Part shown: piece after piece, positions 13,776 through 25,721 of the stretch
Numbering within the stretch: position 1 is the first letter of the stretch
Layout: every line of letters begins with the position of its first letter
Source: Iphione sp. A-MEVVRFRX5
Taxonomy: Eukaryota
NCBI GenBank assembly: GCA_976226885.1
Contig: OZ320319.1
Location: 67,704,001-67,768,000 of the forward strand
Length of the DNA: 64,000 bases
Direction: 5' to 3'
Notes under the pieces: generated by a model
Told to the model about the DNA's origin: nothing
Seen by the model: only the letters and a program-made list of their open reading frames with translations
The model's database searches: none
Program-made: the position numbers and the translations under genes

Positions 13776-13905
13776 TCTCAGGACATCGACTGGGACACCG
13801 AAATGAGTCGGAATCGGGACGCGTTCGCCCGCAGTCGGAGTATCGACCAACAGATTGACGAGGAGAGGGAGAAGAGACAAAATGAAATTCAGCTCCTCAT
13901 ACTTG
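13776..13905 (+). CDS. G-alpha exon: alpha-N helix and beta-1 ([44 protein letters not shown])
   Basis: Acceptor TTTTTTCAG, donor G|GTATGT (phase 1). In-frame ATG at 13803. Confidence 0.9.
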
Positions 13906-23397: not shown

Positions 23398-25721
23398 CTC
23401 GCTCTTTCTTTCGCTATCTTTCTCACTCTCTCCCTTTCTCTATATTCTCCATTCCCTTGCTGCAATGGCATGGTCGCATCTCCTCAACTGACTTCGCAAT
23501 TTCCGGCACATAATGAGGAATAGCAAATGCGATCTTGAGGTTTATGTACGTTACACGTATCATATTCAAAGCATGATATATGCACATGTAGTAGAATGCT
23601 CTTATATACATGTACTTGTAAATGCACTGATCTGAGCTGATTTCAGGGCAAAATCAAGTGGAGTATTAACTTTGCCATCATACATCCAAGCAGCATGACA
23701 AACAACCCAAAAAGTGTTAAAAAACTTACCTAATCGTGCTCGATTTTAATCTGACTTGGTGGGATGTTTCATTGTGCTCTTTATCACAATTCCTACGCTC
23801 TCCAATTTTTTACGGTGGTTGTGTATTTCACTGTTTCATATAGAGCAGACCTTACTGTACTTTTGAGAGAGCGTCTTGAAAGTGTCGTAGATGAGCCCGA
23901 ACTGACGGTCCATTTCCAGCTGCTTGCTAGCACTGTGTAGCGGAAGGTTAAGCGTCACTGTAGCCATAGTTTAATATGGACTCCGATACTGCTCCGTGAT
24001 GTTGAAGTCAGTGGATTTAGTTCTCTTCAAAGGTTCTCTAGGGTTACCTCTGGAGAGAAAAAAACCAAAATGTTTCATACGGAGCATTCGAAGTGTATTT
24101 TACTCAATTAAAAAACTCCCTTTCAAGTTAATGAATATGAAGAGCGGTTTAATTTGGCATGATGCGAAAGTTTGGGATATGACATGCTATATTTCTGCAT
24201 CCCTGTTATTTACGGTAACATTCGAATGTGTAACAAGGTGTGACCGTCAAAAGAAAGTTATGGGTTACACAGTTGTAAGCCTGACAGAGTTCAGAAGGAG
24301 CAGCCGGAGGTGTAGAACTGCATAACTTGCCTGAGCGGATACAAATTGAAATCCGAGGAGGTTTTACTATTAATATTTCTTTAACAAAGGAATACAGAAA
24401 GAGTGACAGAATTGCCAGTTATCTGGACTGTTTCAAGTTACAGTCACTTAACATTGATATTTATTTCGATAGTTCATTTCTGATAATTCTTGCTATTTCA
24501 CTTATGAAACATCATGTATACTACCAAAGGGAAACCAAACAAAAAGCTTGAACTAGCAGTCAGATTACATTGTTGCCTTTTATAAGTTGTTAGAATTTAT
24601 ATACTACTCTTGTGTTTTTCATGTGTACAACAGTTACGATGATAATCAAGTACTATGTTCTTTAACTGCAATCGTAAAAGTATACTTTGCAATCCCGCAT
24701 GGGTTCTTACTTGCCACCGATGAATAGCATGCACGTTCAGGAAGAAGTAAAGTTAAACGTCGACATTTTTCTATTTTTAGAATTCCTTGCAAGACAGTTT
24801 GACGACTTTCAGGGACCTGGTGTGCAACCCCTTTTTAGAGAAGACGGATTTCATATTATTCTTGAATAAAAAAGATATCTTTGAGACAAGAATGAAGAAG
24901 CACCCCTTAAGCTTGTGTTTCCCCAAGTTCAAAGGTAAGTAGTTTTGATTATTGCGTTCTTTCTATAAAAAGGTACCAGAATTCCTCGCCGAAAAGCATC
25001 TTCTAGTTTCTACTAATAATATTTATTTTAAAAAGAGTCCTTGGTAAGATGTTATGCAGCTTTTTGTTGGAAGAGGTGCATATCAGTGGAAATTTTATGG
25101 CTTTTTATGCAAATAGTATGCAAATTAGTAATAAATCTTGACAACAGAAAAACATTGTCTTTTCCTAGCATGCATGAGGTGGTGTGGTCCAGGCAGACCA
25201 GACCATCCTCGATTGGCTGGCAAGCGTCAGTTGGCGTGTCGGGGTAGTCCATGCACACGGGGATGATTGTATGTTAATTGCCTCGTCCGGTATGGCCGCT
25301 TCTTTGGTCACTGGTGGTGGATCCAGATAGTTTGCGTACATGGGGATAGCACATTAGCACATTTCGGTCCATTAGTCCCGACCTTAGATCACAGGGAAAT
25401 CAGACCACAACACAGACCATTTCACTCCAGTCCTAGAGGTGGTCTTATAAGTGAGAATTGGCGTCATATGTATATATGTGGACAATGTAAGCCGTTCTTG
25501 TGATAAATGTCGCCTTTGTTTCATTCTGAATAGGTGGGAAGTCGGTCGAGTCGGGAACGAAATTCATTAAGGACGAATTCATTCGATGTAAACCCGTGGA
25601 AAAGCAGCTTTACGTTCACGTGTCTTGCGCAACCAACATTGACCTAATGAAAAAACTCATCAAGGACGTAATGGAGATCATAATCGAGATTAATATGCGC
25701 AAAGCCTCTGCTCCCTTCTGA
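13776..25721 (+). CDS. Divergent heterotrimeric G-protein alpha subunit. Exons: 13776-13905, 16654-16838, 18400-18734, 19589-19717, 21348-21477, 24781-24934, 25534-25721
   Basis: All introns are GT-AG and all phases match, giving one open frame (407 aa from ATG 13803). Motifs: [21 protein letters not shown] (G1), [23 protein letters not shown] (G2), DVAGQ..RKKWIH (G3), FLNKKD (G4), SCAT (G5). The subfamily cannot be assigned by eye. Confidence 0.95.
15352..15626. mobile_element. Degenerate MITE of the GGCC/TTA (Harbinger-like) family
   Basis: Starts TTA|GGCCTA and ends GTTACCAGAAACACAGA..TTTTTAGGCC. The left TIR is partly deleted. Confidence 0.5.
16654..16838 (+). CDS. G-alpha exon: P-loop and alpha-A ([20 protein letters not shown]...ETPENQ)
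   Basis: Acceptor TTTTCTCACCAG, donor CAG|GTAAAC. 185 nt, phase 1 to 0. Confidence 0.95.
17063..17644. mobile_element. Tc1/mariner-superfamily (pogo/Tigger-like) non-autonomous element
   Basis: TIR TA|CAGTTGAGTCTCTATTTCCAACC pairs with GGTCGGAAATAGAGACTTCACTG|TA, with a TA target duplication. Confidence 0.8.
18400..18734 (+). CDS. G-alpha exon: helical domain with Gly/Ser-rich insertion
   Basis: Acceptor TTCCCCAG. Translation ends [29 protein letters not shown](Y). Donor TA|GTCAGT (phase 2) splits the Tyr codon, a junction typical of G-alpha genes. Confidence 0.9.
18880..19037. mobile_element. CAGGCCCG-type MITE, copy 1 (hAT-like, possible 5-bp TSD)
   Basis: Termini CATGCCCATAGCCAAG / CCTGGCTACGGGCCTG, flanks ACATG / ACATC, and two internal GGGGTATCGTCCGATACCCC-type palindromes. 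Confidence 0.75.
19589..19717 (+). CDS. G-alpha exon: switch I ([42 protein letters not shown])
   Basis: Acceptor TTATATTCCAG, donor CG|GTAAAA. 129 nt, phase 2 to 2. Confidence 0.95.
19875..19950. repeat. (CT)n/(CTTT)n pyrimidine microsatellite
   Basis: Direct reading of the sequence. Confidence 0.85.
19960..20330 (+). mobile_element. 3' fragment of an L2/CR1-group LINE ORF2
   Basis: HTRQG...[24 protein letters not shown] matches the conserved ORF2 C-terminus (TR..L..P..RT....SF.Y.G...WN.LP). Confidence 0.65.
21348..21477 (+). CDS. G-alpha exon: switch II/III ([43 protein letters not shown])
   Basis: Acceptor AATTCAG, donor CTG|GTGAGT. 130 nt, phase 2 to 0. Confidence 0.95.
23330..23445. 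repeat. (CT)n microsatellite
   Basis: Direct reading of the sequence. Confidence 0.95.
24781..24934 (+). CDS. G-alpha exon: alpha-3 to G4 ([51 protein letters not shown])
   Basis: Acceptor TTTCTATTTTTAG, donor G|GTAAGT. 154 nt, phase 0 to 1. Confidence 0.95.
25534..25721 (+). CDS. G-alpha last coding exon (..[39 protein letters not shown])
   Basis: Acceptor TTCATTCTGAATAG, G5 motif SCAT, TGA at 25719-25721. Confidence 0.95.

Follow-up and report, generated by a model that had tools for sequence, protein, structure and literature searches.

What kind of G protein is made by a gene whose substitutions fall together on residues that control the nucleotide cycle? The question is raised by a 64,000-nucleotide stretch of the Iphione sp. 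A-MEVVRFRX5 genome (contig OZ320319.1, positions 67,704,001 to 67,768,000; C15:67704001-67768000 of an assembly of 1.18 Gb in 89 contigs), which we call the window. It has no N stretches and carries, on the plus strand at 13803-25721, a gene for the alpha subunit of a heterotrimeric G protein (G-alpha). The original prediction, made from the DNA letters, was of a functional G-alpha class with loosened GDP binding and with hydrolysis that is altered or independent of regulators of G-protein signaling (RGS proteins), i.e., partly self-activating. Our own answer, given with good confidence, is that the locus is an orthologue of a G-alpha already named G-alpha-a in a snail and Gc in a coral, that it belongs to an old lineage apart from Gs, Gi/o, Gq, and G12, and that it encodes a functional G-alpha, most likely one coupled to receptors.

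Placement in the G-alpha-a/Gc lineage

Databases were searched with exon 2 and then with full-length orthologues, including that of Paralvinella (P0140). Among 1.84 billion representative sequences, phmmer with exon 2 found exon-sized fragments from other species carrying the same loop, along with full-length bivalve and brachiopod proteins, and word searches with full-length relatives brought together a coherent family of proteins of 360-420 aa. The listed matches come from bivalves, gastropods, cephalopods, a chiton, a nemertean, annelids (Paralvinella and Owenia), brachiopods, hemichordates, amphioxus, corals, and sea anemones. None of those listed is from a vertebrate, arthropod, nematode, or echinoderm, although a word search is no test of absence, and the search with Paralvinella P0140 listed no annelid relative nearer than Paralvinella itself. 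Two database names are informative: "G protein alpha-a subunit [Lymnaea stagnalis]" (CAA87631.1) and "alpha c G protein [Acropora palmata]" (AFZ78087.1), the latter being the Gc of Mason et al. 2012 (PMC3515558). Other public names of orthologues are inconsistent, ranging over G(o), G(i), G(t), G11, G14, "G alpha 12a", alpha-11-like, and alpha-14-like, and the first six of these are contradicted by the tree.

The maximum-likelihood tree was built in IQ-TREE (LG+C20+F+G4; 60 rows by 370 columns) from the Iphione model, 32 family members, named Gq, G11/14/15-like, Gi, Go, and Gt proteins, two fungal G-alphas, and paralogues from the same genome, these last being partial rows (33-46% of columns for the loci on contigs C17, C22, and C1) with approximate exon edges. 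The Iphione protein, Lymnaea G-alpha-a, Acropora Gc, and 30 others form a single clade with a support of 100/100 (ultrafast bootstrap/SH-like approximate likelihood ratio test) on a long stem (0.63), and the clade is present in 200/200 bootstrap trees checked. Branching inside it mirrors the species tree, with the cnidarians, then amphioxus plus hemichordates, and then annelids, nemertean, and brachiopods beside the molluscs. The Iphione and Paralvinella proteins are sisters (98/75), a pairing that by itself makes an annelid origin probable, and the terminal branch of the former is 0.36, compared to 0.40-0.51 in its neighbors. A protein of the ichthyosporean Amoebidium is sister to the whole clade (100/98), and the group that the two make up has Gq plus the G12-like locus as its moderately supported sister (89/90). 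Gq (100/97) and Gi/o (98/99) form separate clades that do not include the Iphione protein. A published study lists, apart from Gv, a new divergent holozoan family that includes Nematostella vectensis and Lottia gigantea (PMC3971589), and both species have members among our family matches.

The tree thus places the protein within a family described before, in which the atypical residues are common property, and the Iphione gene is an additional member of that family and not a new class. What stands of the class originally predicted is that it is functional, that its lineage is distinct, and that its substitutions are conserved; its novelty is lost to the 100/100 grouping with the snail and coral proteins.

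Gene structure and the conserved substitutions

A three-frame reading of 13.7-25.8 kb resolves the gene into seven coding exons (Table 1), giving a 1224-nt coding sequence for 407 aa with no internal stop and with GT-AG boundaries at every intron, as expected of the intact seven-exon gene first described. The ATG at 13803 agrees with the orthologue N-termini MLKNSKALARSKSID and MQRSKGALARSRSID; the start given earlier, 13776, lies just past a possible acceptor, 27 nt 5' of this ATG. The exon 3 donor (GAATA/GTCAGT, the slash marking the junction) is easily overlooked, in that its closing TA forms a Tyr codon with the C at the start of exon 4, whereas the unspliced frame reads TAG. At the other end of exon 3, the acceptor at 18400 has a pyrimidine tract of 80%, and the first ~25 residues align with annelid and nemertean orthologues. 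Exon 2 corresponds to Gi exons 2 and 3 fused, the arrangement of Gq-type genes, and its closest matches among solved structures are Gq/G11. The Pfam G-alpha profile (PF00503) matches the pieces from exons 2, 4, 5, 6, and 7, covering profile positions 31-333.

Independent support for this splice model comes from the matching exon chain of the Paralvinella palmiformis orthologue (locus L044), which runs 103/185/287/129/130/154/188 nt and reproduces the annotated protein exactly. All splice positions are common to the two genes; they differ in length in exon 3 only, and the 48 nt in question fall within the Gly/Ser-rich portion of the insertion, a stretch that enlarges the Iphione insertion at residues 118-153 (18463-18570). 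Intron 1 of the Paralvinella gene opens with a GC donor (G/GCAAGT, at L044:2001-2110), compared to the GT donor (G/GTATGT) that the Iphione gene has at this position.

Table 1. Coding exons and sequence motifs of the Iphione G-alpha gene, in window positions; residues are those of the 407-aa protein
Feature	Position	Strand	Residues	Remarks
Coding exon 1	13803..13905	+		N-terminal helix (...LLIL) and first base of the G1 Gly codon; 103 nt, same length in Paralvinella
Coding exon 2	16654..16838	+		P-loop G1 (GGASSGKST) and start of helical domain; 185 nt; Pfam G-alpha 3.2e-11
Coding exon 3	18400..18734	+		Helical domain with insertion, QLNDSAAY replaced at its end; 335 nt
Coding exon 4	19589..19717	+		Switch I RKPTVG; 129 nt, same length in Paralvinella; Pfam 6.3e-10
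Coding exon 5	21348..21477	+		Switch II/G3 (G202A, R205K, E207Q, C214F; Q204, W211 kept); 130 nt; Pfam 1.2e-14
Coding exon 6	24781..24934	+		Switch III region and G4 (NKKD); 154 nt; Pfam 8.8e-15
Coding exon 7	25534..25721	+		G5 (SCAT) and C-terminal alpha-5 helix; 188 nt including stop; Pfam 1e-05
GGASSGKS (G1)	13905 / 16654-16676	+	35-42	Across exon 1/2 junction
KHALVMA	18706-18726	+	199-205	
RKPTVG (switch I)	19659-19676	+	232-237	
Switch II motif	21355-21390	+	254-265	
NKKD (G4)		+	323-326	
SCAT (G5)		+	376-379	

All four motifs on which the original prediction was built (GGASSGKS, RKPTVG, switch II, and KHALVMA) lie where it had put them, and an alignment referenced to a 354-aa Gi protein, whose numbering we use throughout, agrees that the catalytic Arg and Gln, NKxD, and CAT are retained. 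Relative to Gi, the Iphione protein carries G42A, E43S, D150M/S151A, T182V, G202A, R205K, and E207Q, and it keeps R178, T181, G203, Q204, N269/K270/D272, and C325/A326. All of GxxxxGKS, RxxT, DxxGQ, NKxD, and CA(T) are present, among them the equivalents of the catalytic Arg (R178), the catalytic Gln (Q204), and the Mg-binding Thr (T181). The N terminus has neither Gly2 nor Cys and thus no N-terminal acylation site, and the helical-domain insertion, located between helices A and D, adds ~50 residues relative to Gi/Gq and aligns with shorter insertions in the orthologues. The signature of G-alpha-a/Gc proteins is a non-acidic residue 43, a non-Thr residue 182, Gln, Leu, or His at 207, F214, D245, and V184, with A202 added in bilaterians; the Iphione protein has S43, V182, Q207, F214, D245, V184, and A202.

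A residue table of 44 bilaterian, 9 cnidarian, and 15 canonical sequences separates what the family holds fixed from what it has changed. G40, G45, K46, and T48 are invariant among the 53 members, and position 47 is Ser or Thr; D200, G203, Q204, R208, K210, and W211 are kept in 53/53, T181 in 51/53, and R178 in 50/53, with NKxD and A326 essentially invariant. Glu is found at position 43 in none of them. At position 42, 30 bilaterians have Ala, 10 (heterobranch snails) have Pro, and 2 cephalopod-type sequences have Ser, with Gly in brachiopods and all cnidarians. Most bilaterians have Leu, Val, or Ile at 182 (Thr in four), where cnidarians have Gln, and residue 207 may be Gln, Leu, His, or Met. 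Ala 202 is found in 44/44 bilaterians and in Amoebidium, with Gly in 8/9 and Glu in 1/9 cnidarians. D150/S151 is retained in cnidarians, reads Glu-Ser in deuterostome members, and is gone in lophotrochozoans, which have a 2-4 residue insertion there. No member has Gly2 (0/53), 3/53 have a Cys within the first 12 residues, the C termini follow N[LMV][RK][RK]... with a last residue that is usually aromatic or aliphatic, and the helical-domain insertion is variable throughout. The same changes are thus fixed across phyla, as the original prediction had proposed to check, and the substitution set is real and conserved and appears to have been acquired stepwise across the family.

The Iphione protein keeps 73/73 of the columns conserved in at least 90% of the 53 members; in a leave-one-out comparison, the median member keeps 96%. 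Between Iphione and Paralvinella, the nonsynonymous divergence (dN) is 0.36-0.39, far under a synonymous divergence (dS) that is saturated (2.76 by LWL85, undefined by NG86), so that the dN/dS comparison suggested in the original prediction comes out in favor of constraint but is indicative only. As far as its sequence tells, the Iphione gene is intact and under purifying selection.

Outside the family, a Drosophila biarmipes "G protein alpha q subunit" (P0302) that falls inside the Gq clade reads GTGDSGKS, RVPTTA, DVAGQRNQRRKW, and TVATN; it shares G202A and E207Q with the G-alpha-a/Gc family, apparently by convergence.

Nucleotide cycle, alternative readings, and other G-alpha loci

An AlphaFold model was made for the Paralvinella orthologue P0140, 55% identical to the Iphione protein, from a 48-sequence alignment. 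The model has a confidence (predicted local distance difference test, pLDDT) of 87 and a predicted template modeling (pTM) score of 0.82, with a disordered insertion at residues 113-146 (pLDDT <50), and its top Foldseek matches are Gi1, Gt, Gq, and G13 chains at target TM-scores of 0.70-0.77. Modeled on this closest orthologue, the Iphione protein would have the full G-alpha fold. By alignment, all residues required for Mg-GTP binding and hydrolysis are kept (P-loop GKS/T, R178, T181, G203, Q204, NKxD, and CA(T)), as are the Gbeta-gamma surface residues of switch II (K209, K210, W211, H213, F215, and E216) and a conserved alpha-5 C terminus. The protein is most likely a receptor-coupled, Gbeta-gamma-binding heterotrimeric G-alpha, and because the Gly2/Cys acylation sites are missing, it probably attaches to the membrane through its basic N-terminal helix and Gbeta-gamma.

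The altered residues suggest how such a protein might cycle. In Gi1, G42V slows GTP hydrolysis, and the GTSNSGKS loop of G-alpha-z goes with slow hydrolysis; with Ala where Ras has G12 and Gi1 has G42, and with a non-acidic residue at 43, the Iphione protein probably hydrolyzes GTP slowly as well. T182 is a main RGS4 contact and E207 is another, and since both are replaced, classical RGS proteins would probably be poor accelerators of this G-alpha, which would make for long-lived signals. Ras-like GTPases normally have DxAGQ, which is DTAGQ in Ras itself, and G202A may be seen as a return to this form that need not disrupt the switch. The altered or RGS-independent hydrolysis first proposed is therefore a plausible consequence of residues 42, 43, 182, and 207.

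A stronger proposal is that the protein is partly self-activating, with loosened GDP, receptor-free GTP loading, and a slow, RGS-independent switch-off. The E43-R178 and D150-K270 contacts bridge the nucleotide cleft, and the family does alter them: E43 is present in no member, lophotrochozoan members including Iphione lack D150/S151 and have that loop extended by 2-4 inserted residues, and a long disordered insertion sits in the helical domain, in addition to the replacement of T182 and E207. Self-activation is also known in plant and some protist G-alphas, with a convergent origin suggested (PMC3971589). However, the alpha-5 C terminus, alpha-N helix, and Gbeta-gamma surface are conserved across the family, which is hard to explain if receptors are dispensable, and the helical domain is closed in the orthologue model, although this is weak evidence. 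Coral Gc gave a GTPgammaS-stabilized tryptic product with acropsin 1 in the light and none in the dark (PMC3515558). A protected band that needs both light and opsin would, by analogy, reflect receptor-driven exchange and argue mildly against self-activation, which we consider unlikely in the Iphione protein.

Several points nevertheless weigh against a receptor-coupled member of the G-alpha-a/Gc lineage as we describe it. The case for Gbeta-gamma binding and receptor coupling comes solely from conserved residues, and no kinetic data for any bilaterian family member were found in the accessible literature. The coral member that was assayed still has G42, G202, and D150/S151, and because cnidarian members keep these residues, the assay does not settle the bilaterian form. 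Loss of the R178 equivalent in Gs or Gi abolishes GTPase activity, and this residue is His in Pomacea canaliculata (P0120) and Cys in Aplysia californica (P0136), with Q204 and the rest of the pocket kept; these two gastropod members, being without the Arg finger, suggest that selection does not act to preserve fast hydrolysis in some of the family at least. A search of sequencing runs with exons 2-5 and with exon 3 alone listed none from which expression in the species could be read.

Another placement would make the clade the protostome, cnidarian, and invertebrate-deuterostome arm of Gv, which Oka et al. are said to have introduced in 2009 as a fifth class. In zebrafish Gv, too, the residue equivalent to G42 is Ala, as the peptide ILLLGAAESGK shows (PMC11087313), and Gv is reported in cnidarians, hemichordates, and cephalochordates (PMC5896119), all of which have members of our clade too; the tree, moreover, holds no verified Gv sequence. 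Yet zebrafish Gv has E43 and N-terminal myristoylation and palmitoylation sites (PMC11087313), whereas the family scores 0/53 for E43, 0/53 for Gly2, and 3/53 for Cys, and the coding sequence of preGNAV is split into 8-9 exons, with intron 2 shifted (PMC5896119), whereas Iphione and Paralvinella share the seven-exon, Gq-type layout. Absent from the Iphione gene are thus the acylation sites of Gv, its 8-9 exons, and its class-specific placement of intron 2, the exon that runs from G1 to helix A being uninterrupted in Iphione and Paralvinella alike. PMC3971589 separates Gv from the divergent family that includes Nematostella and Lottia, the matches listed in the word searches include none from fish or echinoderms, and a locus on contig C1 of the same genome, Gi-like with canonical G boxes and a shifted intron 2, falls outside the clade. 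We give a Gv identity little chance of being right and retain the assignment to G-alpha-a/Gc.

The C1 locus (C1:111876001-111906000; L011, L022, L026, L038, and L039) is a further G-alpha, ~43% identical to Gi/Gt, of which ~170 residues were recovered. Its motifs GAGESGKST and DVGGQRSERRKW are canonical, and because one exon spans G1 to ...ELASFR, its intron 2 does not lie where that of Gi does. Exclusion and gene structure make this locus the best candidate for Gv that the genome offers. Fish "alpha-14-like/alpha-11-like" proteins were also considered as Gv and rejected, as they have Gq-type P-loops, N-terminal Cys pairs, and a place in the Gq clade.

That the Iphione gene is a decaying or neutrally drifting Gq paralogue, its atypical residues mere damage, is very unlikely: many neighbors of the catalytic site are altered simultaneously, exon 3 has a low-complexity Gly/Ser expansion, and the sequencing-run search for expression came back empty, but the 407-codon frame is open over seven exons with canonical splice sites, identical substitutions are fixed across phyla, every family-conserved column is retained, the Iphione branch is not lengthened, dN is much lower than the saturated dS, and the gene is a single locus, with canonical Gq encoded elsewhere, on contig C2.

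The genome has one locus of the G-alpha-a/Gc type, with separate loci for Gq (C2, canonical), Gi (C4), Go (C11), Gs-like (C17 and C22), and G12-like (C26) subunits. At C22:42401001-42420000 (L009 and L043), a very divergent Gs-related locus, of which ~124 residues were recovered, reads VFDVGGQQGERQKWIQVF... and ...ILFINKIDLL and groups with the Gs-like locus on C17 (98/91), with a long branch of 1.53. The Go-like gene at C11:84624433-84629662 (L006, L018, L020, and L035) has its switch I exon in two tandem versions, which look like mutually exclusive alternative exons. A weak G-alpha match (Pfam positions 15-269) with seven stop codons on a 2.6-kb unplaced contig (C86:1-2644; L013) was considered as a copy, possibly a retro-copy, of the Iphione gene on C15 and rejected; in tblastn, its best matches are to the Gi, Go, and C1 loci at ~22-24% identity. 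Within the window, open frames matching RVT_1 flank the gene at 2039-2722 on the minus strand (E 5e-19) and 58243-59511 on the plus strand (E 2e-20) and are retrotransposon fragments, and no other protein-coding gene was recognized among open reading frames of at least 130 aa.

Significance and comparison with known G-alpha systems

For this locus, the main outcome is a corrected annotation. Beyond it, we put forward tentatively, as a synthesis somewhat less likely than not to be right, that snail G-alpha-a (1995), coral Gc (2012), and the divergent holozoan family (2014) are one sixth class of G-alpha that predates the cnidarian-bilaterian split and has an ichthyosporean sister. According to this proposal, a Ras-like DxAGQ in switch II, a P-loop with a non-Gly residue, and the breaking of the interdomain clasp would have come one after another in bilaterians, and the outcome would be a lipid-free, slow, RGS-insensitive G-alpha with its own effector. 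No literature joining the snail, coral, and holozoan descriptions as one clade was found; two key papers lay beyond the coverage of that search, and no priority is claimed.

The lineage offers natural, fixed changes at the textbook mutagenesis sites G42, E43, T182, G202, E207, and D150, and the series from cnidarians through deuterostomes to lophotrochozoans amounts to a natural experiment in retuning the G-alpha nucleotide cycle. What is known of its function comes from one opsin-coupling assay in coral. Where receptors of molluscs and annelids are deorphanized with Gs, Gi, Gq, and G12 reporters alone, a G-alpha-a/Gc pathway may go unnoticed.

Among the known classes, Gv is like the G-alpha-a/Gc lineage in being ancient, patchily retained, and poorly understood, and its zebrafish member has Ala 42; unlike the Iphione protein, it has E43, acylation sites, 8-9 exons, and a shifted intron 2, a description that the C1 locus fits better. 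G-alpha-z, with GTSNSGKS, has a non-Gly residue 42, a non-acidic residue 43, and very slow GTP hydrolysis, and the Iphione protein resembles it in its divergent P-loop and in both of these positions. G-alpha-z, however, is a vertebrate, Gi-derived retrogene that is myristoylated, has canonical switches I and II, and is regulated by RGSZ/RGS20, and it has no phylogenetic link to the G-alpha-a/Gc clade. Gq/G11 genes share with the Iphione gene seven coding exons, a 185/129/130/154-nt pattern, intron positions, and P180 in switch I, and preGNAQ is known to have seven coding exons (PMC5896119). At the level of the protein, by contrast, identity to Gq is ~30%, the clades are separate, and the Iphione protein has no TGESGKS P-loop, palmitoylated Cys pair, or ...EYNLV tail.

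Nearer relatives are found in corals and snails. Mason et al. named Gc for cnidaria, reported no human orthologue, and pointed out the missing N-terminal Gly/Cys (PMC3515558); although it was named for cnidarians, the clade includes bilaterian members. Acropora palmata Gc (AFZ78087.1) resembles the Iphione protein in lacking the N-terminal Gly/Cys, E43, T182, and E207 and in keeping the catalytic Arg and Gln, but cnidarian members carry only part of the substitution set, with G42, G202, and D150/S151 kept and a much shorter insertion. Lymnaea G-alpha-a (CAA87631.1), in the same 100/100 clade, is ~42% identical to the Iphione protein over its full length. Knol et al. (1995, J Biol Chem) reportedly described it as a novel G-alpha with atypical guanine nucleotide-binding domains, and it is reported to be neuronal. 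The snail protein differs in having Pro 42 (GGPGAGKS), Leu 207, and Trp 179, where Iphione has Ala, Gln, and Lys, and the insertion sequences of the two are unrelated. Common to both are the absence of an acylation site, a non-Gly residue 42, the loss of E43, the replacement of T182, DVAGQ, a helical-domain insertion, and a basic C-terminal tail.

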